Source: Macrostomum hystrix
Lineage: Eukaryota; Animalia; Platyhelminthes
Assembly: GCA_950097015.1 (NCBI GenBank)
Contig: CATNEN010000039.1
Location: forward strand, 4,588,001-4,652,000
Length of the DNA stretch: 64,000 bases
Reading direction: 5' to 3'
In this document: positions 21,040 through 49,251 of the stretch, piece after piece
Position numbering within the stretch: the stretch's first letter is position 1
Layout: the number at the start of each line of letters is the position of its first letter
Position numbers and translations under genes: made by a program
Notes under the pieces: model-generated
Database searches by the model: none
The model's input: only the letters and a program-made list of their open reading frames with translations
Told to the model about the DNA's origin: nothing

Positions 21040-22100
21040 TTTAGATGGCGAAAATGTCTGGAAATCATTTCAGAAAACTGAGTACAGTTTTATAGCTACT
21101 GCTTAGACCATAAGATATGTTAGATGTTAATATTTAATACATAAGAACCTAGCCAATATCTAATTAAGACTAAGATATAGCTAAATATATTACTTTTATA
21201 CATATATTTTATTAAACTTCTTTCTAATATATAACAAAACTATAGGTATGTATTTTAAGTGTCTAGTTGAAAAGATCAGACAAAAATAAATATTGTGGCC
21301 TGGTTAAAATTTTAGGTAGCATTAAAATTTTTCAATAACTGGCTATATTAAACAGATCTATTAAGATTTGAATTTGTTATACATTTTACAAAGTAGGATC
21401 TATATATAGAATTCATAATATCCTATTATTTAATGATCAGACTCCTAACTAAGAAGTTGTTTGTTTATGGTTTCCTCAAATTACAGTTAACTACAAAAGC
21501 TATCTAAAAAGTATTTTAGCTACTAACAAATATACAAATATCAGGGAGTTGTAATACTTGCAATCTTCTAATGTAAATTGCAAAAAAATATCATTTTTAT
21601 TGACAGTTGCTGATCCAATTTTCAAACTTTAATTTCAGGGGAAAATGGCATATAGTATAGGCATAGCAGACTTTAATATGATTTACATTTTTGGCTTGGT
21701 GCACCTTTAAGTTTGTGTGAGTCTGAGCAGTTTGAGTAAAATTGAAATAGGGCATAAATATTTACATCAAAGTACAGCATAAAACATGGACCTCGTTTTA
21801 ATTATATCTAGCCCCAGCCCTGAGCATAGGCCTAATATATTTTTTTTTATTTCAATGTAAGAATATTGTCCTCATTCACTCTTTTTGCAATGCAATTTGG
21901 TAGACAAATCACAATTGCATAATCGACTTAGCTATTGTGGAATATACCTAGCTATGGACCATTTTTAATTTATTGTGCAGTGTCATGAGTCATAAGTGAC
22001 CTAGTAAATGATAATGAATACACATAAAATTTTGTAAGAACTATACACCAACAAATGTTTATGTCAATATGCAGAAGTTGCTAGGGCCAATATATTATAG

Positions 22101-23063
22101 CACCCGACGGCAATAGGCTAGACTGGGAAAAAGATCAAAATATCTCCAGGCTTGCCTGGCAAAAGCTGCGCTTTCCCGCTTTCTTGGTATCATTGCCTGG
22201 GAAAAGCGCAGCTCTGATGAAATGCATAGGGATAGCTTGGCAATGCTAACTAAAGCCAAGCAAAAGGAAAAAATGCGTGATTTGTTTAAGTATAGTCTCG
22301 TGAGAGAAACTCGCGTTGTTTAAAAATACTTGGTTTTTTAAATTAAGCATTATTAGAAACAGGGGCGTGGCATTCTGGGCTTTTGGTAATTGATATATTT
22401 GAAAAGTACTTCAGATCGTTTTAATTTGACAGGCCTGTGTAGTAAGCTACATTGAAATAACTTATGTCTGGACTAATAGTAATGCTAATACTATATTACT
22501 AATATTACAGGGTATGCTTATTTTCATGCATGGTATAAGCATCCAAATTCATGGATTGGATTGATATAATGATATTATATTTCATATCCATAGCCATATG
22601 TCCAATTATATAGATGATTTGTATATTTGAATTGGGCCTTGACTTGATGATGTCTGCAGTATCCTGGCCATCATCCTATGTGGCTAAGATGTCATATTAA
22701 AAGTGGTACATCATACATGTAATTATTATTATAAATGATAAAGAAATTAATCTATTCTAGACTGGTTTTCTTTGCTTTGTTGCCCGCCTATATCATAGTC
22801 AAATGAGTTATGTTTTGCTTTTGGCAAATGCTTAAAAAACAGGCCCAAACAATAAATTGTATTTGCCTTTCTACTGCTATATATCCTCTGATTTGTCCCA
22901 TAATCTATTTGTTATTTTGCTCTATTTTCTCTTCTATAATCTATATTATTGGTTATTTTAGCTAGGGAGATGCTGGGTCATTCTGAAATTAGACCCAAGA
23001 TGGCTCAGTGCCATCCACATTTTCTGTTTTGGCATTTTTTGTATCCTGAAATTCAACCCTGGA
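22101..23063 (+). repeat. Left terminal inverted repeat (963 bp)
   Basis: Matches the reverse complement of 39302-40264, same length; no differences seen in the stretches compared by eye. Confidence 0.95.
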
Positions 23064-23408
23064 ACCTTACTTTCTGCCCCTCCCTACTTTCTGCCTCTCC
23101 CTAATTTCCCCTCCCTTTTTACCCTTGTCCGCTTTCTGCCCCTCCCTACTTTCTGTCCCTACTCACTACGCTCACCAACTTATGCCCTCTGCCTGCCAAT
23201 CACCTGATTTAGCTGCCTTGCTGCTGTCACCCGCCACACCCCCACGCCTCCCTGATTCACTTCACTCTAGCTGCATTCACTTCCCTGCTTTTACTCTCTG
23301 CATTCACCCTTCCACTTTTACTGAACTGCTCTCTGTTTGATCTGAGGTGTTGAGAAAACAAAGTGATGTAGTAAACTTAGCATGTAAGGAAACAATTTCG
23401 ACTTTCAG

Positions 23409-26400
23409 TTGCCCCGGAAGCTCAATCTTTCCATCCGAGTGAGAAGACAGCGCGGTCGTGGCTCACTTGTACTCCCACATAGTGTCGCACACAACAATTG
23501 GCGTTCTCAAGCGAACTCAAGCAGCCAAGGTGAGCCTTCTCAGGTTCCCATATCTGAGCAGTTGGAAGAAGAATGGGAGGACGAAGCAGCATTGCCGGCT
23601 CCGCAACAGCGAGACTGGGAGCAAGAAGTGCCCATTGATAGTTCTGTAAATGCTTCGTTTCTCCAACAGTTTACTCTTCAGCCATGCTGCCGGTGTTTGG
23701 AAATTTATGGTACAATGTTTTGTGTAACGTGCGCAAGACCGTTCTGTAAAGAATGTGCTGATGTAACGCATGGTAACTTTTTGGTGCATACATTTACCAT
23801 CTGGAATGTAAGTTTATAATTTTATAATTTGTTTTCTGTTATTCTTATACTTTGCATGTGACGCTCCAATATCGGGATTCGTGAACATTATACATTCTTC
23901 ATCATGTTATTGTATCTGTGGCTACGTGGATTGTAGATATGACCTTTCCTTCCAATTGCAAATGTCTGATGTGTGATGCAGTCTTTGCTTCCCCGAGTTC
24001 GAATCTCAACTTTTTGGCCGCTTAACCTGTACTACCATGTATTTTGTTTTCTGTGCAATGTGTACTGTATATTACACATACATCTCCTGGGGCCAATTTT
24101 ATAAAGCCTTGATCATAGATAAAAATATATGAAACCTTTGATTTTATCATGTGCCACTTTTATAAAGAAGTGATAGAAAATCTGTCCACTGCGGGCATCC
24201 TGCCAATGCAAATTATACTGACGAGACGTCTATGGGAGAACTTCCAAATTTGGGACTAAATAAAGTTCTTTCCATTCATACCCTTTTACGCACTGTTTGA
24301 TTAATTACCAACGCTGACTCAGTTTTCATCATGGCTTTATAAAATAGGATTTCAATCGATTGATAACTGGTGGGCCATCTGCGATTTTTAACCATAGGTT
24401 TTTTACCAAGGCGTTATAAAATTGGCCCCTGGAACTATAATTGAAACTTAATTGTACATTGTTCTATGTTTCAGGGAGAGATGTTCCAGGAGTCCGCTTG
24501 CGCGGACCCACCGGTTATTAACTGCTGCCAAAACGCCAGAAAACAGCTGGTGAATAACCCAACTGCCGAGGTGTACGACTGCTTTGGCCGTAAGATAACA
24601 TTAATTTGTGACGTTTGATGGTGCCGAGTATCTGCTATGCATTTACCTACCGAGTAGCCTTTGTGGTTATTAAAGCATTGTTCTATAATTTTCTAAAGTT
24701 GTATGGAGCAAAGTACTGTATTTCTATGCATGTTTAACTTGAATTGTAAATGACCAAGTTGCAACGAATTTCAGGCTGAAGCACCCATTAGATGCTTTCC
24801 GAAGCACTTCTGAGCTATGCCCTGATTTAAAATTGGCTGTCTTCAAATTCCAATTGAAAATTAGAACGACTAGGGCAGGTGCTGTGTGCAATTGGGGGAA
24901 GCAAATGTTGGAAATACTATCATTTGTGATTTACTCTCTGCTGGTGCGATTGGCTTGCTGAAACCCTGTCGCTTTCTAGGTCGCATTCCCGTGTCAGTTC
25001 ACCTGTGCTCACAGTGCACGATCACTGGAGCGATGCTATCAACAGGATACTTTCCCGCCACGAAAATTAGTTGTTTTACATTTGTTGACAAGAGGCTGCT
25101 GGACATGCTGGACTGTCTAACCTCGGACGGAAAGATGTCGCTTCTGCGAGCGGTGCGCTCCATACTGACGTCTGGTAATATTCCTGCAGCTAGTCAGTGC
25201 GTAAGTGAAAAGCAAATATTTTTATTCTTTTTTATATTTTTTTCTGTACAGACACTTAGTGCAATAAGAGAGGATATGCTTATATTTTCGAAGAATTTAC
25301 TTACCTACCTTGATTTGTGCTTATGAATGTTTACATTTAATTTTTATTTCTAGACATGGGTACAATTGTACGATTCACTGCGCCGGAACGGAGTACTTCA
25401 ACGCTACCGGCAACTGATTCGACAAGTGATTCCGTGGCCAACTGAGTGCCTGTTCTGTCCAAATGGAGTAAGTGCCTATATTAGAAACATGCCTTCCGGT
25501 TCCAAATTATTTTGGGAATCTTGAAAACTAAATTTTCATAAAATTCCTTGACTTTTTGAATTTGAACCCCTGTTGAACATTCAGGGTGACGCAGCTGCAT
25601 ACTTTTGTTCCAGAACACTCCTGGTTCAACGCCGTCAACGACATGCGTCTCAGCGGATGCTTGTTTTGGTTTGCGTCACAGGCGACGTGCTGGTGAGCAG
25701 CTCCACCCCTTGCCAACTGACGGCCGTCTCCCGGCACCTTTCGTCCATGTTCCCATTGAAAGTACGGAAGCAGCGGATGCAGTAGACGATGCAAGTTGTC
25801 CCAATTGGAGAGCTGGTGCAATAAATCGAAAAATCGCATCCCGAGCCCTCGATGTCAACGCCTTCTTCATGCTGTCATGCAGGCATTCCATTATCGTGGC
25901 ATGTGCAGACATCCGATCACCGGGAGAGCGTCTGATCTACGCAGAATCGTGTCTCCGTTACTTTATTGAGAAAGCCGGCGTGAACGGCATTGTAATATTC
26001 ATCTACGATGTCGCTTGCAAGATGATTCGTCGATTGCAACGAATCGCAATGGAATATCCGTTTGTTTCCATCATCCCAGCCGTCAATGTTTTTCATGCCT
26101 TCGCTCACAAGACATCCTGCCGGGTATAATATAATATATAATATATTCATATTATCGAATAAATGCTGTATATTTTTCTCTGGGCGTTGGGCCGTTCGTA
26201 CTATTTTTTCTTGTTATTATTTTAGCTGAAGAACTCCGTGCGATTTGTTGAAGGCTGTGGCCTCACTGACGGTGAACATAACGAACGACTGAACTCAGCG
26301 TTTCGACCATACGGACCACATCTCAAGGAAATGCGCATTGACCGTCGAACCTACACTCTGGCGCACTATGTTTGGCGTTCCAATGTTAACCATTTGCTTC

Positions 26401-29400
26401 AGAGCGGTGCGTGATATGCATTGTTACATATCTAATTAAGATCTATTATATTATATTATATCTATTATATCTATTATATTTATATAGATACATTAAATTG
26501 ATGCACTGTATATATCACGTAATAATAATAATAATAATAATAGTTACACTCCACGCCGACCACAGAAGTGGCCAAGAGGGGGGAGCGTCAAAACGCGCGT
26601 TTCAGTGCCAGGTCTCTGACGTGCTTCACGCCTGCCGCCTGGCTGGGTGCTCGGGCGTCTTCAAAAAGGCGGTCAATATAGCGGGCTGTACGTCCCTGGC
26701 CGCGCCTGCGCGGTCCCTGCGAGGTCCACAGCAGGACATCCTGCAGCGGCTCTGGGCAGTAGGCTTCGGCGCGGATGACATGCCCGGCCAGCCGCAGTCG
26801 CCGCTGACTCAGCAGGACAGAAGGCCGCGTTAGGCGCGCACGCTGGTACAGGGACTCGGTTGTCTCGCTGCCAGGGCCGCGGCGGGCGCCGAAAGCGGCG
26901 CGAACTAGGGCCGCATGCGCCGCGTCGAGCTGCGCCTCGAGCGCCCCGGTCATCGTCCAGGTCTCAGCATTGTACAAGAGGGCGGTCTCGACAACTGCCT
27001 GGAACAGCTGGGACCTGGCGCCGTTCGACAGGGCCTCGGAGAGTAGCACCGCCCGCACAGAACGGTAGGCGGCCCAGGCCTTGCCGCGTCGTCTCGCCAG
27101 GTCGTCGCCCACGTCAGGCACCAGTCCGCCGAGGTAGACGAACTGACGGCACTTCGGGAGCACGGTCCCGGGGCCGTCACCGTCTCTTAGTCGAATCTCG
27201 GCAGGTAGGTTTTGCGGCACCGTCAGCACCTCGGTCTTCATGGCGTTGATAGCGAGGCCGACCCTCGCCGCCGCCGCAGTCAGGCCATCCAGCAGCCGTT
27301 GGGCGCCTTCGGCCGTCGTAGACAGCAGGGCAAGGTCGTCCGCGTAGCCGAGGACAGACAACTTCTTCTCCGGGTGCCGTCGACTAGTGCGTCTTTGAAG
27401 CAGAAAACCGTCCTCTGCAGTCGGCAGGCCGGTCCTGAGCACCCAGTCCATCACCAGCACGAAAAGAAAAGGCGCCAGGGTGTCACCCTGCAGCACTCCG
27501 GAGGTAGTGCTGAACAGGTCCGACGGTCCGTCTGGCGTCGCTACCACAGCGGTGGTGTCCTGATACAGTGCCATGATGGCGGAGATCAGCTGCTGCGGTA
27601 TGTTGTAGGCACGGAGCACGTGAGGCAGCGCGCCGCGGGCCACCGAGTCGAAAGCTTTGAGAAAGTCAACAAAGATGACGACAAGGCTTGACTGGTGGAT
27701 GCGCGCCTCCTCGATGATGCGACGGAGGGCCAGGATCTGAGTCACCGTGCCGCGACGGGGCCGGAACCCATTCTGCTCGTACCGCAGAAACGAGTCCAGC
27801 ACAGGCTGTAACCGTGCTAACAGCACCCGGTTGAACAGCTTCGCGGCACAGGACATGAGCGAGATCCCGCGATGCTCCTCCTTCTTTGTAGTGCCCGGCT
27901 TCTTCGGGATGCCGACGATGGTGGCCTGGGTCCACTCGCGGGGCGCAGGGCCTCCCGCCAGGACGCCGTTCATCACGCGGGCCACCTCGGTGGCAACCCT
28001 TGTGACTCGCAGTGCCTCTACGGGGACCTCATCCGGACCGGGGGCGCGGCCTCCCGGTGCCCTGCGGGCGAATTCCACGATGTCGGTGCTGGTCACTGGA
28101 CTGGTGTCGAAGTCCTCCTGCCGCGGTAGCGCCACCTCGGGGGGCAGCGGCATCTCGTTCGGCAGAGTCGGCGGCGGCGCGTTGACAATGGCGGCGAAGA
28201 AGGTGCGCAGCTCGTTTCTGCGCTCCTCGGCAGTATCGCCAGCCAGGTTGAGCGCCGCTTTCGTTTTGCGACCGGTGAGGGCGTTCACAACGGGCCAGAC
28301 GACCCTGTTCTGCCGTTCAGGCCCGACAGAGGTGACAGCCCGGATCGCGTCGTCAACAGCGGCTTTCTGTCGACTTGCGTAGGCGTCTGCCAGGGCTTTC
28401 TCGGCATCGGATGTCGGTCGCCTGGCTCGCCGCAGCTGCTCGACAGTGCGGCGGGCCTCACGTACCTCCGGGTCGCTCGCCCAAACTGGAAGTTGCCGTG
28501 ACGCGGGTTCCATAAGCGGCAGAGTCTTGGCAGCGGCAGTGGCGATGGCTGAGCTAATTGTGCTGTAGTCCGGCGCCTGCGCTGATCCCAGGGCGGTCGA
28601 AAATATATCACGTAATTGTATTCCGTATCATTAATTACCACTACCAGTTTTCCACAGAATTTATTCGGCCTTCTTTTAAGATCCGTAATAACATAATATA
28701 TGTTTTCCATTATTCGCATCTAATTTCAGCTTCATGGTTGAAGGACAGACTGCGACTGTTGGACAAACACTCGGCATCTTTGAAAGATATATTGCACCAA
28801 TTACTTCCGGAAGGTGATTACTTACTCTTTAACTTAGATTCGGTTTGCCTTTGATTAGTCGAATCGATTAGATTAGCCATTACCGTGCGTCGAACTCGAA
28901 ACTGATTTTTTTCCAGGGCGTGATCCGCATCTAGTTTTGCAACAGGGGCAGCTGCATCTACAGGAGTACCTTGCTCAACAGGAAGCCTTACCGTTAACTC
29001 CGCTAGAGCGACTCCGTTGCGGTGCTGTTGAGCTGCGGCGTTTGTATTCGAAAATTCGCCAGTGCAGCTCACAAAAGGACGCCAGGGTGTACACATCAGA
29101 ACTTTCTGTCGTTGAGGGCGAGATGGCAGCAGTATGGTCCAAGGATCTGCCGGAATTTTCCAGGAGGCCTCTAGTGACTTACAAGAATCCTATGGCCGAG
29201 GTCTACGATGATGTATATGTAGATGAGCCGGCTGTCCAGTTTCATCGACGCGCCATTGAGGCTTCCGCTCTGCTTGCTCGAGTAAGTGAGGAGTGCAATT
29301 TAATCCGCGAAGAAGCCTCTCGTCTACAACTGCGCCTCAGTCAAGCGATCGCCTTGCTACATGGGAGGCCAGGATTATTTTCCAAATGTCGTTGCGCTCT

Positions 29401-29569
29401 TGAAGTTGTGCGGTCTCAATGTCTTCAGCTGAGTCCTCAAATCCATTCGTATTCCGTACTCAGTGATGCTAACAAGTCATCATCACATTCGCAAGCATCG
29501 GATGACTCTTCCGAGTATGCTTCTTCCGACTCATCGGCTAGAGGGGATGCTGCATATTTATCTGATTAA
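23409..29569 (+). CDS. KDZ (Kyakuja-Dileera-Zisupton) transposase with B-box-like and CxC Cys clusters; exons 23409-23807, 24475-24589, 24980-25200, 25354-25467, 25614-26123, 26226-26406, 28730-28813, 28917-29569 (~758 aa; start codon unresolved)
   Basis: All GT-AG, 2277 nt open frame; motifs GYFPAT, CLFCP, SADACFGLRHRRRAG, SCRH..D..GER, YDVAC, FHAFAH..SC, GCGLTDGEHNERLNS. Confidence 0.88.
24090..24428. mobile_element. PIF/Harbinger-like MITE (339 bp) in the first mapped intron of the transposase
   Basis: TIRs GGGCCAATTTTATAAAGCCTTG / CAAGGCGTTATAAAATTGGCCC; 3-bp TSD CTG at 24087-24089 and 24429-24431. Confidence 0.8.
26524..28602 (-). mobile_element. 5'-truncated non-LTR retrotransposon (RTE-like LINE) inside a transposase intron
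   Basis: (TAT)n 3' tail at ~26521-26542; TSD ATATATCACGTAAT at 26510-26523 and 28603-28616; sharp GC shift; no endonuclease domain. Confidence 0.9.
26588..28513 (-). CDS. LINE reverse transcriptase (truncated ORF; frame stays open up to the insertion edge)
   Basis: APGPDEV, RGISLMS, QNGFRPRR, FVDFLKAFDSV, GVLQGDTLAPFLF, YADD, FVYLG. Confidence 0.95.
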   Translation of the reverse strand: MEPASRQLPVWASDPEVREARRTVEQLRRARRPTSDAEKALADAYASRQKAAVDDAIRAVTSVGPERQNRVVWPVVNALTGRKTKAALNLAGDTAEERRNELRTFFAAIVNAPPPTLPNEMPLPPEVALPRQEDFDTSPVTSTDIVEFARRAPGGRAPGPDEVPVEALRVTRVATEVARVMNGVLAGGPAPREWTQATIVGIPKKPGTTKKEEHRGISLMSCAAKLFNRVLLARLQPVLDSFLRYEQNGFRPRRGTVTQILALRRIIEEARIHQSSLVVIFVDFLKAFDSVARGALPHVLRAYNIPQQLISAIMALYQDTTAVVATPDGPSDLFSTTSGVLQGDTLAPFLFVLVMDWVLRTGLPTAEDGFLLQRRTSRRHPEKKLSVLGYADDLALLSTTAEGAQRLLDGLTAAAARVGLAINAMKTEVLTVPQNLPAEIRLRDGDGPGTVLPKCRQFVYLGGLVPDVGDDLARRRGKAWAAYRSVRAVLLSEALSNGARSQLFQAVVETALLYNAETWTMTGALEAQLDAAHAALVRAAFGARRGPGSETTESLYQRARLTRPSVLLSQRRLRLAGHVIRAEAYCPEPLQDVLLWTSQGPRRRGQGRTARYIDRLFEDARAPSQAAGVKHVRDLALKRAF

Positions 29570-31559
29570 GGCATTTTTGCTATTTTGCTAGCAGATGACC
29601 ACAAGTGCCGCATTTTGTTCGAAATTTACTGACTGACTTCAACTTCAATGCCTCGGAAGTGCCGGATTTTAATACGCTGCCGAGAGGATCTATCTGTGTC
29701 AGCCAGCTTATTTCACAATAGTTTTAGTTTTCTCTGTTAAACAATATGTTGAATTTTCTGCCTAAAGTTGTTTTTACTGGTTGATTTATGCAAGTTTTGT
29801 TTTTATCTAGGACTTTTTTAGTAAGCGTTTAAGCTTTGATACAGCTAGACTTTCACTTGTGTTTCAAACTAAAACTTTTGTTCTGAAATGAATAAAGTTG
29901 CTTTACATTGTTTTTTCCCCACATTTACGTTATAATATAGTAACTGCGTCTGCGCTCCTGCGTCTGCGTTTCTGCTGCATGATGTGACTGAACCCCCAAA
30001 GTGCACTTTTCAAATTTCCTCCTCCAATGCAATTCACTGATTCAAATAAAACATTTGGGGTACTAGAAGATGTTGGCTAATTTGGGCTTCAAAAGGGGGC
30101 GCATCGCTAAGAAAGTTGGGCGGAGTGCAAAGAAAATCTGGTGTGAGTGCCACAAAGATGGGAGGGTTCACAGAAAATGACGGGGCTTGAGATTTCTAGA
30201 AAGCACGGTGCTAAATAAATCGGCAACCCAGAAGAAGGCGGACATGACCTTGCCGACTGTGCGCTGAACCTTGAACTTCCTAGGTGGTGCTTCGCCTGGT
30301 TGCCTCCACTCCATAGACTGGCTTTTGCTTTCGGGTCTGCTGTTTGTTTTTAAATCTAGAGCACCAAATTAACAGTCATTGAAAATAAACGAGGCATTTT
30401 TAAGAATGCTTTTTTATAACGGAATGTGAATGATTCATCTTTGAAATGTAAAGTCACGCAGCAGTCAATTCTGTCATATTAGCGTGATCGCGGATTTTAT
30501 TGGGATATCTATTTGCAGTAAAGTGAACTTATTACTGGATCTCAGGGCTGAGTTTGATGGCCTGCAGTGCAGCCACTCGGTCGGCTGGTGTTAGAGGACC
30601 CAACACCAGTGTTCCGACGGATCCGTGCTCCGCAGGCCAAGCTGAGCAGCATACACTATGCCGGTGCAGGGTGACGTCAGCACAAGTCATCAGATCTCTG
30701 GACGGCAGCCTCTCCGGGTAGTGCACGCCCATGGCGTATGGGCAGCTGCGGTGGCGGTCAACTTGTGAGCGACAAATGTGACAAGTGACATGACAAGTGA
30801 CATGCATGCTACAAAGCTTACATGTACAGTAAAAGTGGGAGACAAGTGTATAGGAGTGAATGTTCTACTGTTGTGAATAGTCAGATTTACATGTTTGCGC
30901 GTAGTATGGCTGACAGACTAGTAACTTAAAATTGTCAGTGCAATTGAAATTTTGATGTTGAAACGTAATTTTGTCCACTTGTAACTTGTCAACTCTAATG
31001 AAGCACTCCACAGGCCGCACCACACTCCATCTGGAATATATTATATATATATACATGTAGATATATATGGAATGGATCAGATTCAGCAACCAAGCCCCGG
31101 CAGGCTTCCATCAAACAGGTATATCATATACTGCAGTATATGATATACCTGGTTACCGATATATCGTCAGCTACAATGCTGTACAGTATAGCTTGAATTA
31201 CAGTACAGTATGCTCCAATGCGTTTCTGCAGTACAGTTTATTGTACATGCATTTTATTGATTCCGTTTTATCATTACTAATACGTTCACATACAGTATTG
31301 GAGAATGGGTTCGCGGGTTTTGCTCAGTGTTTTGGCAGCGTCTAACAATTAGCCGCGCGCACATCAAATGGAAGCCGCCCTCTCTCCCCTTCCTCGCTCT
31401 ATAAAGCTGTTTAGAACTCTTACAGTTACACACAAATTAATATATATACGCTCGCGTGGACTCGCACTTCTCTATTTGGCTAGCACGCCACAGCATTACA
31501 TTGTATATACTCAGCAAAAGCAAACCCCACACAAGACTCACGCCAGTCAGGAGACAATA

Positions 31560-31720
31560 TAATGTTATTGAAGTCAGTCGTGCTTCAGTAGCGTGTGGGA
31601 CCACCAGCCGGTTGATGAATTCTTGGGGCAGCTGCAGCTGCCAGGCATTCAGGACCGCCAGTCGCAATTGCTCAGCATTCTGCGGCGCATTGCGCGATGC
31701 ATCCTCCAGGACAGAGGTGC
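31560..31720 (-). pseudogene. Relic of a Tc1/mariner transposase C-terminus
   Basis: PQNAEQLRLAVLNAWQLQLPQEFINRLV resembles the Tc1 C-terminal P.N..EL...L...W..IPQ..I..LV motif; no intact ORF. Confidence 0.55.
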
Positions 31721-33491
31721 TAAAACCTATAACAGTGTTGAAATTGCAATGACTTCATCATCATCATCATCATCAAATGGTGCAGGATCATGGTCAACTG
31801 GGGGATAATTGTCCACTGGGGGTTCATTGTCAACTGGGGGATTGTAAGCGTTTGAAAAGCGCTTACATCGGTGCTCCTTTCAATCAGCGACCTTCATCTA
31901 CATTTCGACCCACCCAGCGCTCAAAATAGACCTGAGCGGGCCAGACCGGCTGACCTGACGGCCTGGAAAGCAATGACGCAGAGACCGAGAACCTATGCAC
32001 CCTATCAGCCTGCGAACTCGTGCCTAGAATGCTCGCGGCTGGTGTGTTGGTTTGGGGACCATGGCAACGCGGGGCAGAGATATAACTGCATGCTTGTGTG
32101 TTATCTGTTATATATATCTCTCTCTCTGACCCCCCCCTACTGCTAAACACTGTGCCTTATCGCTTGAATATAAAATACACAGCTTCGTAGATATGCTCCT
32201 GCACTGAAGCTTTGAGATGTGAGTCTCACACTCATAAAATTGTTGGCCTCTGTGGTCAGTACGAGTTCAAGTCTTTCTGTAAGTGTCGGCAGAAGGTAGC
32301 AGGCGGCAAGAAAACCTGCTATAGGGATCATTGTCAACTCGGGGATCATTGTCAATTGTGTGATCATTATAGCTTTAAAAAATCTGAAAATACCGCTGCT
32401 GAAAGGTATATATACTAGAGGAATTAAAACTATAGCTCGTATTTCTGCTCCCCTTCGGGGGGCAAAACTTGCTAGTCATTATATTCTCAAATGCATGCAG
32501 TCTTCCAATTATCTGATGGAATCGCAGCTGTACATTTACGATGCTGTGCAGTATAGCTTGAATTACATGTACAATATACATTGCAGCATAAATTTGAATA
32601 TTCCCAGAGATATTCAGTAATCAAATCAGATGGTCAGCGATCGAAAGAGCCACTGCACGAGCGAATACATGTCAATGGCAACCCCTAATGCCCTTACAGA
32701 GGGACCATTTTGGACATAATATGCATATCGATCAATTCGTCATCTCTCCATGAGACACAAAATGGGGATGCACTTGTGAGCAGGTTGATATGGTCACATG
32801 TACTTTGGACAGGCGAAACTGCATAGCCATACACTGTCTAAAAAACGGATCATCAAAATAGTATACTGTAGTTGACATTTAAGAGACTTAAATCGGGCAT
32901 CGCGGGTAATTCCCTTTCCCTAACCCTCACACCCCTCTACAGTATACTATATACATGTATACTATATACAGTAGTGTTGATTCCAATTTATGGTGTTGCC
33001 ATCAACTTCTTAATTCCAGCTGCCGTACCCTAACAAACAAGTACGGCGAAGTGTACGTGGCCATGTCCATTGTACATGTACATGTAGATAAGCTCATGCA
33101 ATGTCCTGCATGTACATGTACTGTTTATTTACTGCACCAGTACACGGGGTATTCAATGGACAGTTCCCCGCGGATAGTGCGTCCAGAAGGCATCGCCTTC
33201 CACAGCAGTATAAATGACTGCTGCAGTTAATGAGTTATAAAGCGCTAACAGCCTTCAATGGTCGGTCTTTTATTGACACTGAGTGCTGCAGTTGCACTCG
33301 GAGGGGCCTTGGCACATAATTTGGCCGTATTACCTTTCCTTTGCCCCAAAAGGAGCACGAAGTAGGGAGGCGTGAGGAACCGTCATCCGTTAAGAACATT
33401 CCTATTTGACTTTGAGTTCTTTACTTGCAAATCTGTAACTTTGAGACTCGACGGAATTGTCATAGGGGCGAAATTTATTATCAATGCAAGC

Positions 33492-33611
33492 ATTGACTTT
33501 CAGCCATAGAAATGACATTTCCGGAGTCCGCTGTCATTTCCGTAGGTGGGTGGGGTGGGAGGGAAGGGAAGGAAGGAATTCTGGTGTCTTTGTCTATGGC
33601 TGAAAGTCAAT
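33492..33611. repeat. Small inverted-repeat element (19-bp arms), possible MITE
   Basis: ATTGACTTTCAGCCATAGA (33492-33510) and TCTATGGCTGAAAGTCAAT (33593-33611). Confidence 0.55.
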
Positions 33612-34925
33612 CAGGAATCCTCCATTTGAGATCCACTTGGCCCAGTGCACATCCACTGATCCAGCAACTCTCACTGCTGCCCACAAACGAGCATGCAATT
33701 TGCGCAATAGATGTGGCTGAGCGCTGATGACTAGTTAAGCCCCCCCCACAGAGGGCACGTACCGAATAGGCAATTTACAGAGGTGTATTTTCTTAAGGAG
33801 CCGTCTTCAGTATTCAGGGGCGCTAACCTGCAGGCGGTGCCCTTCCTGGATGGGGAGGGGCACAGAATGCCTTTCTGAGGTAATCCGCCCAGCGTCTGAC
33901 TGTTAATGCTTGTGTGCAGTGCCACCACCAGTTGTTAAATTGCTTCTTACTTGCAATTTTATTCACGTGTACCAAAATAATAACTCTCACTGATTAAATT
34001 TCTCATTTGTTGATTATAAATTCGTTTGTTGAATGTAGTAAATAAGTAAGCTTAAATTAAAGCGACAGCAGAGGTTTTGAATTGACAGTGCTAATCTTCA
34101 CAAATTTGTCATTCTCATACAACAGAATTGCTACTTTGTCATCTTAAAATCTATCATTTAACAGTCATCAGTTTTGTTGACTGACAGTTAATTACACACT
34201 TTCTTGTATTTCATAGTCATTCCATGAGAGAGAGAACCGAATGCAAATGGCGTACTCGTACAGTCTTGGAGTAAAGCTACTTGTATACAAACGAAATGCG
34301 CTCTGCTACAACCAAACAGAAAAGCAAATGCAATGTTATCGCTATATGTTGGCAATTTCTTTAAAAAACAATATAAAAGATATTGCCAATAACCCGGATT
34401 GCTGGAAAACTCAAATGCAAAAAATAGATCAGCAAAAGGAAACGGCAACCAGAAGCAGCAAGTATGCCACCTAATTGAAAAAATGGTAGCAATGGTAGCA
34501 AAAAATAGCCGGGTATCTCAAGGGACGCGATATATTGTTAGGTAAAGACATATAAAGCATCACCATTGCTGCCTCGAATTGTTATTAGTGACTATACTGC
34601 CTACCATCAATACAACAATACACATACGGGAGGCGGAATGCGAAGTCATGAGACATCGTTTTCAGGGGCTGGTGCAGTGAGAGGCAGTTTTCAGTGGTAC
34701 CAGAAGTGGTTTCCCTAGGAACAGTTTACAAAGCCTTGCATTGGAACAGGTTTAAATTAAGGATTAAGTGCATTCACTTTTTAGTGGCTCGATCAATTGG
34801 GAGCAGGGGCACTCAGTCTTCAGTCACCTACCTGAGGGCACACAATCCGCCTGTATTTTGATATCGAAACTAAGCTGACACTAAACTAAAAACCAGGAAG
34901 AAAACTACCCTGCACAAACGTCAGC

Positions 34926-36938
34926 TTAAATTGCAACAACAATTAGCTCCCCGTTTTCCCAATAGCAGTCTGCGGTGTCCAACTGACGCAGGCCGTCTCC
35001 GAGCTGGCTGCTGCCCACTCGCTGGCCGCTGCCCACTTGCAGGCCGCTGCCCACTCGCTGGCCGCTGTCCACTTGCAGGCCGCTGCCCACTCGCTGGCCG
35101 CTGTCCACTTGCAGGCCGCTGTCCACTCTCTGGCCGCTGCCCACTCGCTGGCCGCTGCCCACTCGCTGGCCGCTGCCCACTCGCTGGCCGCTGCCCACTT
35201 GCAGGCCGCTGCCCACTCGCTGGCCGCTGTCCACTTGCAGGCCGCTGCCCACTCGCTGGCCGCTGCCCACTCGCTGGCCGCTGCCCACTCGCTGGCTGCT
35301 GCCTCCGCGCTGGCCGTTGCCTTCTCGCTGGACGCTGCCTTGATCATCATGGCCGACTCCGTGCTGGACGTCGCCGTGATCATTATGGCCGTCTTCGAGC
35401 TGGCCGTCACCATTGGTGCCAACTACAATGTACAAACAGAATGTAGTAAGTCCCATTCGTGTGGATCGATTTCCATGGATGGGGTTTTGTTGGGATGTGA
35501 TATCCTCCAAAAGGGTATATTTTCTCTCAAATATCCCATCAAAAGAAGGCGGCTATATGGGTCCCAAGGATCCTGAAGCCGATGGGAGTGCCGACACGGC
35601 ATCAATGATTGACTGCTGTGGCTGCGGACGTGCATCGATATGGCAGGCAACTACCTCGAGAGGTCGTGAAAGTTTGTAGATTATGACTGTTTTGGTTTCG
35701 CTTTGCTCCGATCTTGCTTACTGACAATTTCTACGAACTTTTGAAGAAAAAATCCTCGTAGAAAGCTTATAAATACCCGAAAGCGCCGGATGGAAGGACA
35801 GAGGCTGACTAAGAACCGCTTTAATTGCACTGATGTGCATCCACGTTGGATTGCCAACTTCTGGTTGGAAGAAGCCGATTGCTGGGATCTCACTCCACTT
35901 GATGGAACCTTTGCATCCAGCGGCGTCTAAAAAAGCAGTGTAAATGCGAAATTTGTCCACATTTCAAATGATATAAATTATTTCTTTCAGCACATACAAA
36001 TCAATACGAACAGAATTGGGCAAATATTGAGCACAGTACGCAGTAATCTCTGAGCATGCCAACAATCTCTACTTCCGCATACATCAGCTGGTACGAACCC
36101 ACCCACACTTCTTCCAAATTCACCAGGCAGCTGCGAAGGACGCCTGAACTGAGAGGATCCAGCGGATCCACGATTGACATTTTGCAAGGATATAACCCTG
36201 CAAATAGTATAGTTGTACCTTACTTACGAAATGCTTCTTTTGCCTTTTGGCGCAGGACCTTCCTTAAGCCGTTGATAGTCTCCTTTGGCGGACATTTTAG
36301 TTCTCCGAGTAGCTTCTGAAAGAGAGTTTTTAACATTAGTAAGCAGACAATCAACACTTTACGTAAAGAACAATTAATAAATATACCTCTGTAACCTGAC
36401 GAGCCAGCGGCACAAGTTCCTGGTCCTCGGGAGAGCAGGCAAAGTACGGTGGCTTGTTGTCACGGACAACCACCAGAAAGAAGCGAGAAGTCTGATCGGT
36501 TCTTAGCTAAAGTGATTGATTGAGGGACAAAGCAATTATTACCAGATGAACTTATTCTGGCATTCTTTAGCATTCACTACTATCAGCATTCAAAGCCCAA
36601 AAAGACATTCAGAAAACCACGTACCATTTTTTCAATTGTTGACAGCTTAGGTGGCATACTTGCTGCTTCTGCAGCAAGTCGCTGCTTGGTTGCCCCGCTG
36701 AGCCGGTGGTATTTGATTGCCGTTTCCTTTTGCTGATCTATTAAAGAAAGAGAGTGATCAGCTGCGAGGATACACAACTCCGATTTGTATAATTCTGAAT
36801 TCTAATTAAATTAGCTAAAACAATGGATTAAAGCCATTTAGTGAGAACAACTCGAATCGTATACTAATAAAAGTGTAAGAAAGACTTACCAAACTTCTTC
36901 TGCGCCTTCAGAAATGCAGTGTAGGAGTTGCGAACCAT
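34926..36938 (-). CDS. Transposon-borne HMG-box-like protein with Gly/Ser/Gln/Arg hexapeptide tail; exons 36938-36890, 36761-36625, 36506-36387, 36315-36228, 35926-35777, 35422-34926 (~346 aa)
   Basis: Six exons join through GT-AG introns in one frame (1041 nt); N-terminus MVRNSYTAFLKAQKKFADHSLSLIDQQKETAIKYHRLSGATKQRLAAEA has HMG-box spacing; last exon encodes (QRVGSG)n. Confidence 0.65.
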
Positions 36939-37329
36939 CTTAAAAGTCAATAAAAGCGGAACAATGGCATTGTAGAAAGATGCATGCAGACACATGGATT
37001 TGCATTTAATATTTAGGTATCTCAAGAACCGCCCAAAACTCAGAATCCCTACCAAATCGCCAACAGAGGGAGTAAATGCAGCAATAGAGTGAAATTGGGG
37101 GGAGTGCGAGAAGCAAAAAGCAGAGAAGAAAAAGTGGGGTGGAAGATGGGATTGAAAGTGGCGGAACATGACAGTGGGGGCGGGAAAGTGAAACGATCAA
37201 AAGTGCGGGAGCTATTGTAAGACCGTGATAGCGGGTGAAAAAAGTGACAACGAATGTGAGGCCGCGGAATCAGAGGTGCAAATGTGGAAAGAAAGTGGTA
37301 GACGAGCAAAAGTAGAGTAGATGGTGGAG

Positions 37330-38960
37330 TAGAAAGTAGGGAGGGGCAGAAAGTATGGTGGGGCAGAAAGTAGGGAGGGGCAGAAAGTAGGGGGCAGAAA
37401 GTAGGGAGGGGCAGAAAGTATGGTGGGGCAGAAAGTAGGGAGGGACAGAAAATAGGGGGCAGAAAGTATGGTGGGGCAGAAAGTAGGGAGGGGCAGAAAG
37501 TATGGTGGGGCAGAAAGTAGGGAGGGGCAGAAAGTATGGTGGGGCAGAAAGTAGGGAGGGGCAGAAAGTATGGTGGGGCAGAAAGTAGGGAGGGGCAGAA
37601 AGTATGGTGGGGCAGAAAGTAGGGAGGGGCAGAAAGTATGGTGGGGCAGAAAGTAGGGAGGGGCAGAAAGTATGGTGGGGCAGAAAGTAGGGAGGGGCAG
37701 AAAGTAGAGGGCAGAAAGTAGGGTGGGGCAGAAAGTAGGGAGGGGCAGAAAGTATGGTGGGGCAGAAAGTAGGGAGGGGCAGAAAGTATGGTGGGGCAGA
37801 AAGTAGGGAGGGGCAGAAAGTAGGGGGCAGAAAGTAGGGTGGGGCAGAAAGTAGGGAGGGGCAGAAAGTATGGTGGGGCAGAAAGTAGGGAGGGGCAGAA
37901 AGTATGGTGGGGCAGAAAGTAGGGAGGGGCAGAAAGTATGGTGGGGCAGAAAGTAGGGAGGGGCAGAAAGTATGGTGGGGCAGAAAGTAGGGAGGGGCAG
38001 AAAGTATGGTGGGGCAGAAAGTAGGGAGGGGCAGAAAGTATGGTGGGGCAGAAAGTAGGGAGGGGCAGAAAGTATGGTGGGGCAGAAAGTAGGGAGGGGC
38101 AGAAAGTAGGGGGCAGAAAGTAGGGTGGGGCAGAAAGTAGGGAGGGGCAGAAAGTAGGGGGCAGAAAGTAGGGTGGGGCAGAAAGTAGGGAGGGACAGAA
38201 AATAGGGGGCAGAAAGTATGGTGGGGCAGAAAGTAGGGAGGGGCAGAAAGTATGGTGGGGCAGAAAGTAGGGAGGGGCAGAAAGTATGGTGGGGCAGAAA
38301 GTAGGGAGGGGCAGAAAGTATGGTGGGGCAGAAAGTAGGGAGGGGCAGAAAGTATGGTGGGGCAGAAAGTAGGGAGGGGCAGAAAGTATGGTGGGGCAGA
38401 AAGTAGGGAGGGGCAGAAAGTATGGTGGGGCAGAAAGTAGGGAGGGGCAGAAAGTATGGTGGGGCAGAAAGTAGGGAGGGGCAGAAAGTATGGTGGGGCA
38501 GAAAGTAGGGAGGGGCAGAAAGTATGGTGGGGCAGAAAGTAGGGAGGGGCAGAAAGTATGGTGGGGCAGAAAGTAGGGAGGGGCAGAAAGTATGGTGGGG
38601 CAGAAAGTAGGGAGGGGCAGAAAGTATGGTGGGGCAGAAAGTAGGGAGGGGCAGAAAGTATGGTGGGGCAGAAAGTAGGGAGGGGCAGAAAGTATGGTGG
38701 GGCAGAAAGTAGGGAGGGGCAGAAAGTAGGGGGCAGAAAGTAGGGTGGGGCAGAAAGTAGGGAGGGGCAGAAAGTAGGGGGCAGAAAGTAGGGTGGGGCA
38801 GAAAGTAGGGAGGGACAGAAAATAGGGGGCAGAAAGTATGGTGGGGCAGAAAGTAGGGAGGGGCAGAAAGTAGGGAAGGACAGAAAGTAGGGGGCAGAAA
38901 GTAGGGTGGGGCAGAAAGTAGGGAGGGACAGAAAATAGGGGGCAGAAAGTGGGATGAGGA
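37330..38960. repeat. 17-bp G-rich subterminal minisatellite (GGGGCAGAAAGTAGGGA / GGGGCAGAAAGTATGGT), about 95 units
   Basis: Visible tandem array; a few inverse copies next to the left TIR (23066-23165). Confidence 0.95.
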
Positions 38961-39301
38961 CAGGAAGTGGTGAAGGACAGAAGGTAGTGAGGAACAGAAA
39001 GTGGGGAGGTGCAAATAGTGGGAAAGGCAGCAAGTAAGGATGTATTGAAAGTAGAGAGGGGTAGAAAGTAGGAAGTATGGAGGGAAAAACAGTGAGGATG
39101 GACAGAAATTATGGAGTTATGGAGTTACCCACAGAAAGTGGGCATCTTGTAAGGAGTAGGAGAAGGGGCAGATAGTGGGATATAAATGAGAAGGGCAAAA
39201 ATTGGGATAAGATAGGATAGGTAAAAGTGGGGATCAAACTACAAAACAAAATGCTGATGGTTTATTTGCTGCTGTTCCAATAGTTGATATGCCTTTTGGT
39301 A

Positions 39302-40264
39302 TCCAGGGTTGAATTTCAGGATACAAAAAATGCCAAAACAGAAAATGTGGATGGCACTGAGCCATCTTGGGTCTAATTTCAGAATGACCCAGCATCTCCC
39401 TAGCTAAAATAACCAATAATATAGATTATAGAAGAGAAAATAGAGCAAAATAACAAATAGATTATGGGACAAATCAGAGGATATATAGCAGTAGAAAGGC
39501 AAATACAATTTATTGTTTGGGCCTGTTTTTTAAGCATTTGCCAAAAGCAAAACATAACTCATTTGACTATGATATAGGCGGGCAACAAAGCAAAGAAAAC
39601 CAGTCTAGAATAGATTAATTTCTTTATCATTTATAATAATAATTACATGTATGATGTACCACTTTTAATATGACATCTTAGCCACATAGGATGATGGCCA
39701 GGATACTGCAGACATCATCAAGTCAAGGCCCAATTCAAATATACAAATCATCTATATAATTGGACATATGGCTATGGATATGAAATATAATATCATTATA
39801 TCAATCCAATCCATGAATTTGGATGCTTATACCATGCATGAAAATAAGCATACCCTGTAATATTAGTAATATAGTATTAGCATTACTATTAGTCCAGACA
39901 TAAGTTATTTCAATGTAGCTTACTACACAGGCCTGTCAAATTAAAACGATCTGAAGTACTTTTCAAATATATCAATTACCAAAAGCCCAGAATGCCACGC
40001 CCCTGTTTCTAATAATGCTTAATTTAAAAAACCAAGTATTTTTAAACAACGCGAGTTTCTCTCACGAGACTATACTTAAACAAATCACGCATTTTTTCCT
40101 TTTGCTTGGCTTTAGTTAGCATTGCCAAGCTATCCCTATGCATTTCATCAGAGCTGCGCTTTTCCCAGGCAATGATACCAAGAAAGCGGGAAAGCGCAGC
40201 TTTTGCCAGGCAAGCCTGGAGATATTTTGATCTTTTTCCCAGTCTAGCCTATTGCCGTCGGGTG
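39302..40264 (-). repeat. Right terminal inverted repeat (963 bp)
   Basis: Reverse complement of 22101-23063. Confidence 0.95.
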
Positions 40265-42303
40265 ATTATAGCAATAGGCTAGGCCTATAGCGCTAGCATC
40301 AGTCCTGACTCCTGACAACTGACAGCTTGTTAAGGAAAAAGTTTTGGATTTGACTCTGGTAGATTTTTTGCGCTTTTTACTATTAATTCATAATAATAAG
40401 AAAGCAGACAAGGCAATAAAGAAACTAACTTTGGTTTAGTATATTAAATTATTCATTTAGGCCTAGTAATTGAAATGGACAAATACAAATGCATGATTAA
40501 GCATCAGCAAGCGACGAACTCTTAATCGTAACAGATAATTTCTTAGAAAAACTTAAATTATATTAAAGCTTAATAGTGGTCGTGGTGTCAATTGCACTTC
40601 AGATATAGTGAAAATTAGCAAGACAGTATACAGTTTCTTCACGCGAGTATGTTTATCATTCACATTCGCAATGTTTGCTTTGTGCAACAAATATTTCAGA
40701 CACACAGATCTAGGTTTTCATATTTATTATATTCAGGGATAGATAAAAAACGCGTTACTTCAAAAAGCTTCTCTTCACCTTTACAATGTCATTATTGTTA
40801 TGAGCAAAAATTGTTTAAAATGTAAACTTCAACGTATAACTTTGTTCAATTATTAAAAGGAACTGGTTTTTTTAAATACACTTGTTATGCTTAGTTTGAC
40901 GGTACGAAAATAGAAATTCATAGAAACTGTCAGATCGGCGCAAAGACCACTTCATGAAGAGGTCTTGTCTTCTTGTTATAATAGTCCTTGGATCGGCGTT
41001 GGCGGTGGTGGCGAATGCGCCCACGGCCACACTACCCATAGTACGGTGTATATTATACATATAGCTAGATGTTTTATGGCTGACTTGCAGGCGCTGGGTC
41101 TCAGCCCCCCGGACACTGTTGCCTGCCCCTCCTGTCTGTTTCGCAAGTGCGTGTCTCGCGGAACATCTATCTAGTACATGTAGCACATATTGTGTATTTT
41201 ATTATTATTATATGTGTATAATATATTAATAGTATACACGTATACATATGTTTTGTATATATAGAAAAGTGAGATATAAGTTTTTTAACTGAATATACAC
41301 ACAGCTTTATTTTAAAGTGCTTGTTTTTGTATGTAGTGAGTAGTGATAACTTAAGTAGCAGCATATTAGCTACCTGCCTAGTTGAAGTTGGTTAAGCGTC
41401 ATGTTTTCGCTAGAGTGCTGCCATAGAATCCATAGATACAGGTATGGCTATAGGAAGTTGCAGTTATTATGGACACAGCTTTTTGGACAAAATTTACTGA
41501 TACAGATATGATTACAGGAACTTCTGTTTCCCATATCTTTGTTCTGTCTCTTGAGTTTGCACCAATGTGATTAAAACAGTGCAGAAACAAAAGAGACAAC
41601 AAAAAATAGAACACTAGAGAGAAAGAAACACAAGCATAAACAAAAAGTTCAGTTTTGTCATCTCTAATAAATCAGCCTGACAATGCCAATCGACTTGGGA
41701 AAACAAGTCATGTTAATTTAGCTATTTAGATTATAAAAAAGAAAAATGGGAATTTTTGTGTTTACCTTTATTTTCTTGACCTTCATAAATCTGTTTCATA
41801 CCTTCATAGACCTTCAAAGCCAAAGGGGAAAAGGTTTTTGTGGGTTCTGAGTAAAAAAGTTTGCAATTTTGTTCTATACACAACCACTTTCTATATAATG
41901 GCTTCTATATCCCAGGATTACCACACAATGACTTAATAGGACATGGGGAATTAGGGATTTTGGAAACATTTTTTCAAATGTGAATTGAATAAAAGTTCAA
42001 TAGAGTCAAAGGGGATGCACTGAAGATTACTCATATTTAATTGTAGTATAGGCAACTATAGGCCTGAGGCTTTTGTGGGTACCCAAATATATTGGAATAC
42101 CAGACTAAGTGGGAAATAGTGATTGATTTTTTAGGTGAAGTGAAGAATAATTGGTTTACACTTTAACTTATTTTTTATGTTAATTTTGTCAGGTAAATTG
42201 TGTCCAATTTTTTAGTTTTTTACTTTGTTTTTAGCTATGAGGTCTTACTTAGCCATAATTTGTGACTTCAGCACTGTGCAACAGCAGACATTTAGAACAA
42301 GGT

Positions 42304-48300: not shown

Positions 48301-49117
48301 TCCCTAATCCCATCGGTTCTCTAATTCCCTAATCTCATCGGTTCTCGAATTCCCTAATCCCATCGGTTCGCTAATTCCCTAATCTCATCGGTTCTCCCAT
48401 TCCCTAATCCCATCGGTTCGCTAATTCCCTAATCCCATCGGTTCTCCCATTCCCTAATCCCATCGGTTTGCTAATTCCCTAATCTCATCGGTTCTCGAAT
48501 TCCCTAATCCCATCGGTTCGCTAATTCCCTAATCTCATCGGTTCTCGAATTCCCTAATCCCATCGGTTCTCCCATTTCCTAATCCCATCGGTTCTCGAAT
48601 TCCCTAATCCCATCGGTTCTCCCATTCCCTAATCCCATCGGTTCTCGAATTCCCTAATCCCATCGGTTCTCCCATTCCCTAATCCCATCGGTTCTCGAAT
48701 TCCCTAATCCCATCGGTTCTCCCGTTCCCCAATCCCGTCGGTTCTCCCGTTCCCTTATCCCATCGGTTCTCAAATTCCCTAATCCCATTGGTTCACGAAT
48801 TCCCTAATCCCACCGGTTCTCTAATTCCCTAATCCCTTTGGTTTTCCTCAAATGGCAGCTAGCTAATGACTGGGCTACTAATACTTTATCAATACCCTAC
48901 TTCCCTTTTCACTGTTTTTCGATTCCCTTGATTCCTGTCAAAATATGCCAGCTTATCAAACTTCCTGCCGGCAAAGGCTTTAGTTTTCCAAATTTAATAT
49001 TTCCAGCTGCAGAGCCACCAGATCTTCCACGTGTTTGTCGTGGCCGCTGCCTTTGTGCACTTTCACGGCATCACTCAGGTGGCCAATTATCGGCTAACTT
49101 ATGGATACTGTCAGTAA
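42304..49117 (+). CDS. ADIPOR: Adiponectin receptor (PAQR family); exons 42304-42486, 43257-43614, 44809-44989, 45374-45561, 46426-46619, 49007-49117 (404 aa)
   Basis: LPDWLKDNDFL..GHRP, SIFRVHTETGNIWTH, SFLFHTVYCHSE, LDYCGI, RFPERLFPGKFD, QSHQIFHVFVVAAAFVH; phases consistent (1215 nt); first exon less certain. Confidence 0.93.
42770..43080 (-). mobile_element. Putative SINE, longest copy, in AdipoR intron 1
   Basis: Joins the head seen at 16425/11005 to the body seen at 1795. Confidence 0.65.
43660..44752. repeat. 25-bp repeat in AdipoR intron 2
   Basis: CCCATCCAGATCCCATTCTTCTACA. Confidence 0.95.
45031..45337. repeat. 20-bp repeat in AdipoR intron 3
   Basis: TCAGGAATGGTCATTTCCAR. Confidence 0.95.
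45654..46262. repeat. 12-bp-based repeat in AdipoR intron 4
   Basis: CCCTTCACCCAT / CCCTTCACTCAA. Confidence 0.95.
46663..48845. repeat. 25-bp repeat (~87 units) in AdipoR intron 5
   Basis: CCCATTCCCTAATCCCATCGGTTCT. Confidence 0.95.
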
Positions 49118-49251
49118 AATGTATTCATTGACTGCTAACGAATCCGCGAAACCCTTGGCTGGAAATGTTAAAAAACATAGTTCAGTTTCTTTGCTTCAAC
49201 CATTGCATCCATTTTACACTTTTGATAACAAACAAACCTTCCTTATCGGTA

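Follow-up and report, generated by a model that had tools for sequence, protein, structure and literature searches.

An 18-kb locus of the flatworm Macrostomum hystrix very probably represents a complete KDZ-superfamily DNA transposon

Introduction

Detailed accounts of DNA transposons of the KDZ (Kyakuja-Dileera-Zisupton) superfamily come mainly from fungi, with Zisupton as the example from fish, and the literature searched yielded no account of such elements from flatworms. A 64,000-nt stretch of the Macrostomum hystrix genome (assembly GCA_950097015.1, contig CATNEN010000039.1, positions 4,588,001 to 4,652,000, forward strand; hereafter the window, in whose numbering positions are given unless a contig is named) carries a KDZ transposase gene and a second gene of opposite orientation between two inverted repeats. 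It raises the question of whether this locus is one complete transposon, what its second gene might be, and whether this copy is in working order or a relic. An initial annotation, made from the letters of the window, had described it as a delimited KDZ transposon with kilobase terminal inverted repeats (TIRs) and two convergent spliced genes; our analysis supports that description, with a KDZ domain encoded on the + strand and a spliced gene on the − strand. We conclude that positions 22101-40264 very probably constitute a single, structurally complete member of a lineage of KDZ-superfamily cut-and-paste DNA transposons in flatworms. The element belongs to the known KDZ class, of which it represents an undescribed flatworm lineage, and is not a new kind of element.

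Results

Ends, target site and copies

The element measures 18,164 bp. Its left TIR (22101-23063, + strand) and right TIR (39302-40264, − strand) are 963 nt each, and alignment of the two arms showed them to be 100% complementary, as the initial annotation had claimed. The termini read CACCCGACGG...CCGTCGGGTG, that is, 5'-CA...TG-3', and the 7-bp direct repeat ATTATAG that had been noted on both flanks is indeed present as two identical copies of a target-site duplication (TSD), at 22094-22100 on the left and 40265-40271 on the right; the empty target site of the element would read ...GGCCAATATATTATAGCAATAGGC.... Both hallmarks of cut-and-paste transposition, defined ends and a target-site duplication, are thereby found at this locus, which sits in AT-rich DNA. 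The inverted symmetry extends past the 963 nt into oppositely oriented tandem arrays of 17-nt units, the left subterminal array (23068-23160, +) comprising 5.8 copies of TACTTTCTGCCCCTCCC in inverted orientation relative to the right one (37331-39072, +), which comprises 104.6 copies of AGAAAGTAGGGAGGGGC.

Related sequences in the same genome fall into two families, here called family A, to which the element itself belongs, and family B, its sister. Family B has six full-length members, which are spread over four contigs, range from 14.9 to 22.3 kb and resemble each other at 97-99%; their termini read CACCCGACGGCAGAGG, and their TIRs of about 690 nt are followed on both sides by inverted arrays, about 0.9 kb long, of a 21/34-nt unit. 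Common to A and B are the terminal 85-110 nt or so, both genes with identical intron positions, and the inverted subterminal arrays, whose units share a GGGGCAG core. One B copy (C1:10728461-10750711) is 22.3 kb long, as against about 15 kb, and a nested insertion in it is probable.

Only this locus bears the full 963-nt TIR of family A. The outer 106-138 nt of the A end recur at short derivatives and at a truncated end: one short derivative spans 896 bp between perfect TSDs (TGTCGGC), and a second pair of ends encloses 546 bp (C39:12665343-12665888) without a clear TSD. The truncated end, 100% identical over 131 nt, is found at C10:284706-284836 and C41:393088-393219 with the same flank and interior, which suggests one locus represented twice, as a residual haplotig or a segmental duplication. 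In addition, an internal A fragment (C1:10764675-10768439) matches 26368-32936 at 88-96% identity and lies only 14 kb from the 22.3-kb B copy.

Next, the TSDs of other copies with these ends were tabulated, a check that the initial annotation had proposed. All six full-length B copies are flanked by perfect 7-bp duplications (TTTTTTT, AATTGAT, GTGGGGC, AATTTGC, AATAATT and ATTAGGC). Together with three short B derivatives, the 896-bp A derivative and the element itself, this gives a perfect 7-bp TSD at 11 of 14 paired insertions, and the three others, older short derivatives, match at 5-6 of the 7 positions. No target-site consensus emerged among the 11 perfect sites. Because the same terminal sequence stands on six full-length B copies and about ten short derivatives, and because the duplications are 7 bp long, a chance origin of the ends is excluded.

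These copies also indicate which part of the TIR may matter. The TIRs of A and B align within their first 110 nt or so only, short repeats are concentrated there (a direct repeat TTGCCTGG(C/G)AAAAGC, present twice, and a 14-nt palindrome), and the outer 110-138 nt or so, shared by the left TIR with family B and the short derivatives, are what the latter retain. On these grounds we infer that the outer ~110 nt are the likely functional end, the remaining TIR being presumably an extended inverted duplication.

Perfect identity of two 963-nt arms is also what a collapse or duplication error could yield, so that the inverted repeat might be a chimeric or fold-back join of a PacBio assembly. The M. 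hystrix assembly was produced from PacBio reads with canu, purged of haplotigs and polished, and comprises 220,453,370 bases in 42 contigs, its repeat content being left for later work (PMC10468722). We consider such an artefact vanishingly unlikely: this architecture recurs in six B copies on four contigs, each between TSDs of its own, the copy in the window is surrounded by a perfect 7-bp TSD, its interior is unique and asymmetric, and of the 31-mers in 22000-26500, 63-68% are present in sequencing runs of another study. A further run, which belongs to the study of the probable source and bears another organism's label, contains 71% of them, reflecting either a near-identical sequence in another species or cross-contamination.

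The right flank has a peculiarity of its own. From the last TSD base onward (40271-40282) it reads GCAATAGGCTAG, identical to TIR positions 9-20 (22109-22120). Coincidence, a target preference and a widespread host repeat are all conceivable explanations; the further idea that the flank is what is left of a second element was rejected, the identity to the TIR being confined to 12 nt. The same flank forms a palindrome, ATAGGC-TAG-GCCTAT, and motifs of the TAGGC(C)T type adjoin three other insertions.

The transposase gene

Comparison of A with B by tblastx revealed eleven conserved blocks on the + strand, and one consistent gene model with eight exons resulted when only GT..AG introns that agree between the families in relative position and phase were allowed. 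Pfam, PDB and Atlas searches were made exon by exon, and the spliced models were joined for the checks of frame, conservation and substitution ratio. The coordinates that the initial annotation had given for the two genes (23409-29569 and 34926-36938) agree with the models derived from this conservation. The transposase model holds 758 open codons, all its introns are GT..AG, and their positions and phases are as in B. Exon 1 (23409-23807, + strand as are all others) begins directly after a TTTCAG acceptor, has no in-frame ATG and encodes a zinc finger with a weak B-box signal. Exons 2 (24475-24589), 4 (25354-25467) and 7 (28730-28813) are supported by conservation with family B; exon 3 (24980-25200) encodes a weak CxC2-like cysteine cluster (E 0.015, under the cut-off); and exon 8 (28917-29569) includes the stop codon. 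The KDZ domain (PF18758) is split between exon 5 (25614-26123; profile positions 3-164, E 2.7e-17, 63.6 bits) and exon 6 (26226-26406; profile positions 165-216, E 1.1e-6, 29 bits), both matches lying above the 26.6-bit cut-off. Open reading frames (ORFs) on the + strand at 26411-28382 were considered as transposase exons and rejected as antisense artefacts of the reverse transcriptase (RT) ORF described below.

The transposases of A and B are 63.8% identical, with a ratio of non-synonymous to synonymous substitution (dN/dS) of 0.14, which reveals purifying selection. Against 60 homologues, nearly all columns conserved at 75% or more are kept, including, in the core, D305, CRH379-381, GE394-395, YD421-422, H451, H455 and DGE475-477 (numbered in the stop-to-stop frame from 23388, which starts 7 codons ahead of the exon model). 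The core exceptions, Q460R and W483N, are both common to family B. Among 1.84 billion representatives, the closest match is a 777-amino-acid protein of Macrostomum lignano with 49% identity, collinear with the exons; more M. lignano proteins, carrying B-box or CxC2 annotations, come next, and then a chytrid and an amphioxus protein. In the nearest homologue both CxC2 (E 9.8e-4) and CxC1 (E 1.2e-3) fall under the cut-off, and no transposase exon or close homologue gave a match to SWIM or CxC4.

The transposase frame contains no ATG and is open for no more than 21 nt ahead of 23409, and in A and B alike the coding sequence begins directly after TTTCAG. The 35-nt spliced leader of M. lignano ends in ATG (PMC8629364). 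It is matched at 35 of 35 positions in the M. hystrix genome, in tandem gene arrays; the TTTCAG acceptor fits the published trans-splice motif [T/C]TNCAG, and a leader joined at 23409 would place its ATG in frame. The host spliced leader may therefore be trans-spliced at the acceptor 23408/23409 and supply the AUG of the transposase mRNA. As another source of a start codon we considered a first exon within the TIR that would be conserved and carry an ATG, for which both families offer short ATG...GTAATG candidates, and rejected it, the TIRs being unaligned beyond about 110 nt.

Leader-related sequences also occur elsewhere in the genome. An array of a leader variant with three mismatches, still ending in ATG, runs with a 927-nt period over C39:12667884-12685526 and starts about 2 kb from the 546-bp family-A derivative. 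Leader-like sequences with two or three mismatches are scattered in the genome, one of them (C39:7709360) about 390 nt upstream of a fragment of the RT element.

The partner gene

The second gene lies on the − strand, and its model comprises six exons encoding an open frame of 338 amino acids, with all five intron positions and phases the same in B. Exon 1 (36890-36938), 49 nt long in both families, has its ATG directly after an AG acceptor, as in B. Conserved blocks and shared splice positions define exons 2 (36625-36737), 3 (36387-36506) and 4 (36228-36315), and exon 5 (35777-35926) is likewise conserved with family B. Exon 6 (34926-35422, stop included) encodes an acidic, histidine-containing stretch and then a (QRVGSG)n tail that arises from an 18-nt array at 35003-35339. 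A low-complexity tail derived from a tandem array thus ends the protein in both families, with different units, (QRVGSG)n in A and (GPNSSGPRGGGPSGG)n in B.

Across the N-terminal 173 amino acids the A and B proteins align without gaps at 57.8% identity; the proportion of non-synonymous differences (pN) is 0.28 against a saturated synonymous proportion (pS) of 0.80, giving a pN/pS of 0.35. Homologues of the partner exons were found in the genome inside the six B copies only, but for a single stray match of one exon on C1, and the DNA of 34900-37330 is otherwise unique in the genome. Given the shared intron positions, the conservation of the N-terminal part and an occurrence almost confined to these elements, the partner is a real, element-specific gene held under constraint. 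In family B, exon 4 has A6 instead of A7 in two of the four copies examined (L023 at ~2890 and L024 at ~2100, as against L025 and L026), which produces a frameshift and may be either real decay or a homopolymer error of long reads.

What this protein does is a matter on which several readings can be compared. The initial annotation had called it an HMG-box protein; the spliced gene on the − strand stood up to analysis and the HMG box did not. The N terminus (MVRNSYTAFLKAQKKF...KYHRLSGATKQRLAAEAA) has a visual resemblance to such a box, but no partner exon matched PF00505 (Pfam, E<=1), and a six-frame scan of the genome with this profile at E<=10 returned 46 places, split HMG genes of the host among them, and none in the element or in the B copies. 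A cold-shock-domain-like nucleic-acid binder was suggested by exon 5 of the A copy, for which several cold-shock proteins of the PDB scored weakly and in one register (best E 0.077), and a glycine-rich repeat tail ends the proteins of both families. This lead is faint: neither B exon 5 nor a two-sequence A+B profile reproduced the match, Pfam was silent for exon 5, and the Atlas neighbours were at noise level. We accordingly hold it improbable that the partner is an HMG-box protein or a cold-shock-like binder. No match to TET/JBP was found in the element either.

The gene might instead be cargo, that is, a captured host gene or a passenger with no role in transposition, as has been proposed for extra ORFs of fungal KDZ elements. 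The Cryptococcus KDZ elements likewise carry ORFs of unassigned function (PMC11343200), the partner has no recognisable DNA-binding or transposition-related domain, and the exon 4 frameshift in half of the B copies examined would suit a dispensable passenger. Against this reading stand three points: except for the single stray exon there is no copy of the partner outside these elements, its position, orientation, intron positions and repeat tail have been preserved between two families that have reached saturation at synonymous sites, and its pN/pS is the 0.35 given above. Cargo therefore seems to us unlikely, and the partner is better read as a gene of the element itself.

Nested insertions and the state of this copy

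Secondary insertions account for about 2.8 kb of the 18.2 kb. The larger is a non-LTR-type retrotransposon of about 2.08 kb (26524-28602, − strand) that lies antisense in transposase intron 6, carries (AAT)n as its 3' tail and stands between the two copies of a perfect 14-bp TSD, ATATATCACGTAAT (26510-26523 and 28603-28616). It contains the largest ORF of the region, a 641-amino-acid RVT_1 frame at 26588-28513 that Pfam identifies as reverse transcriptase. Its uninterrupted target site is visible in the paralogous C1 fragment, and intron 6 measures 2,323 nt here as compared with 214 nt in B. Lying within the intron, the insertion leaves the transposase coding sequence untouched. Dozens of copies of this RT element are present in the genome, at least eight of them identical at 100% over the full length (for example C38:13637817-13639892) and others variably truncated at the 5' end. 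The RT family looks very recently active, and because the copy inside the element is identical to its relatives, its insertion there was very recent too. A second group of nested repeats occupies 31766-32490 (no strand assigned), where a dispersed repeat of about 480 nt (about 31840-32323) sits inside another repeat of ~74-nt units; the former has more than 25 copies in the genome at 94-96% identity, some of them as tandem pairs about 1.37 kb apart.

Several observations weigh against the reading of the locus as a structurally complete KDZ element. Family A has a single full-length copy, beside which stand one internal fragment, the 896-bp derivative with its perfect TSD, the 546-bp pair of ends and one truncated end, and so bears no sign of recent amplification. 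The antisense RT insertion of 2.08 kb that enlarges intron 6 could disturb expression. The CxC2 match of exon 3, at E 0.015 and 15.9 bits, is under the 27-bit Pfam cut-off. The partner, finally, has no domain recognisable in exon-wise searches, and its role is conjecture.

It is quite possible, although we do not favour it, that this copy is an immobile relic, stranded and silenced or disabled by the nested RT element and other insertions and bound to decay, with family B alone alive. Besides the single full-length copy, the RT element in intron 6 and the nested repeats at 31766-32490, such a fate would fit the left subterminal array, which has dwindled to 5.8 units where the right one has 104.6, and the state of family B, with its six copies 97-99% alike and its transposase frame open in all four of the copies examined. 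Yet in this copy, too, both ORFs are open, the core residues are conserved, and the TIRs and the TSD are perfect; the RT copy, 100% identical to many others, must have arrived very recently; and a truncated A end elsewhere is still 100% identical over 131 nt.

Three features point to a probably recent origin of this copy as well, namely its perfect TSD, the open frames and that identical truncated end. The identity of the TIRs adds nothing to the initial annotation's view of the element as young; it is no clock, as both TIRs travel along in cut-and-paste transposition. Its further suggestion of a possibly active family finds no support in a family with a single full-length copy that bears nested insertions. 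Family B is the better candidate for current activity: its six copies are nearly identical, its transposase frames are intact, and perfect TSDs flank short derivatives of it. We retain the reading of 22101-40264 as a structurally complete element, which in itself makes no claim that it still moves.

Genomic surroundings

On the left, the nearest recognisable host gene encodes a cysteine protease of the ATG4 type (Peptidase_C54, E 1.8e-28), exons of which lie at 12298-13555 on the − strand. To the right, 3.4 kb from the element, a dense block of tandem arrays at 43667-49935, with units of 25, 20, 12, 25 and 32/48 nt and a strong skew of C over G, resembles the subterminal arrays. No Rfam families were found in or near the element.

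Discussion

The features that seem to set this lineage apart are a B-box N terminus of the transposase, kilobase TIRs continued by inverted arrays, a conserved orphan partner gene and, probably, a dependence on the spliced leader. They allow us to propose how the element might move. A transposase with an RNase H fold, comprising a B-box, a CxC-like cluster and the KDZ core, would recognise the conserved outer ~110 nt of each end, cut at CA...TG and integrate with a 7-bp staggered cut. The orphan partner, with its N-terminal part of about 175 amino acids and its low-complexity repeat tail, would act in transposition or its control, and by analogy with TnpA of En/Spm it may do so on the G-rich inverted subterminal arrays. 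We put forward, tentatively and as rather less likely than its alternatives taken together, the fuller proposal that this is a flatworm-specific KDZ lineage with two host-adapted traits: a transposase translated only after an AUG-ending leader has been trans-spliced, and a lineage-specific orphan protein with a repeat tail that serves as a TnpA-like accessory factor on the G-rich inverted arrays with their GGGGCAG core. If true, both traits would be new for the KDZ superfamily, and a transposase that owes its AUG to the host spliced leader would be an elegant example of dependence on the host.

The value of these results is incremental, in that they refine classification and biology within a known superfamily. 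They provide a comparative set of two families that are about 64% identical in protein, six near-identical B copies, and short derivatives that keep only the outer ~110-138 nt. This set probably defines the ends that the transposase binds, fixes the TSD at 7 bp and shows that the second gene has been kept under selection. Macrostomum is a model for transgenesis and regeneration, in which an endogenous, possibly active transposon of large cargo could matter as a mutagen or a tool.

In layout, the element recalls two plant systems. En/Spm is autonomous with two genes, has CAC... termini and carries subterminal repeat arrays that are bound by its accessory protein TnpA; as a CACTA element it makes a 3-bp TSD. 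MuDR, also autonomous with two genes, has these in convergent orientation, and Mutator TSDs are 9-11 bp. The likeness to both is one of layout only, as their transposase superfamilies are unrelated to KDZ and their TSDs differ from the 7 bp of the element. The initial annotation had gone further and seen genes driven from the TIRs, as in MuDR; this is unsupported here, where coding starts 346 nt and 2.36 kb inside the inner ends of the TIRs.

Within the KDZ superfamily, Zisupton and Dileera make 8-bp TSDs, whereas fungal Kyakuja elements have 7-bp TSDs and CA..TG termini, no TIRs, and TET/JBP genes (PMC12730594). Kyakuja-1_LB and Kyakuja-2_LB of the Agaricomycotina (PMC12730594) resemble the element in their KDZ transposase, 7-bp TSD, 5'-CA...TG-3' termini and multi-gene content. 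They are reportedly without TIRs and carry a TET/JBP dioxygenase, whereas the element has 963-nt TIRs, inverted arrays, a B-box and an orphan partner and gave no TET/JBP match. The absence of TIRs described for the fungal families does not hold for the flatworm elements, whose TIRs measure 963 nt, perfectly matched, here and about 690 nt in B. The element behaves like Kyakuja in its TSD and termini, the weak CxC1/CxC2 signals of its relatives being ambiguous.

KDZ1-3 of Cryptococcus, 9-11 kb long, carry extra ORFs and make 8-bp TSDs; the TIRs of KDZ1 measure 236 bp, and movement of these elements has been demonstrated experimentally (PMC11343200). The Cryptococcus neoformans elements KDZ1, KDZ2 and KDZ3 share with ours a large size, long TIRs, a transposase that combines CxC with KDZ, and extra ORFs; they differ in their 8-bp TSD, their place in the Dileera clade and their fungal host, as against a 7-bp TSD, TIRs fourfold longer, arrays, multi-exon genes and an animal host. 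The combination of TIR length, TSD length and gene content that had struck the initial annotation as unfamiliar is therefore less so than it seemed: a 7-bp TSD with CA..TG termini has been published for fungal Kyakuja (PMC12730594), and for Cryptococcus there are published KDZ elements of large size, with long TIRs and additional ORFs (PMC11343200).

Among animals, teleost Zisupton, as the account of Bohne et al. 2012 is relayed in PMC12730594 and PMC9297572, is like the element in being an animal KDZ element with TIRs and a multi-exon transposase; its TSD is 8 bp, whereas the element and family B have 7 bp throughout. The canonical Zisupton transposase carries CxC4 and SWIM domains (PMC11343200). 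Nematode genes termed 'Zisupton' are multi-exonic and associated with TIRs, with no TSD detected (PMC9297572). Closest of all are the B-box/CxC2/KDZ proteins of M. lignano (PAA67003.1, PAA68011.1, PAA74961.1 and others), which bear no annotation other than that of hypothetical proteins and which, compared as proteins alone and at no more than 49% identity, are collinear with all the larger exons of the element's transposase and have its domains in the same order.

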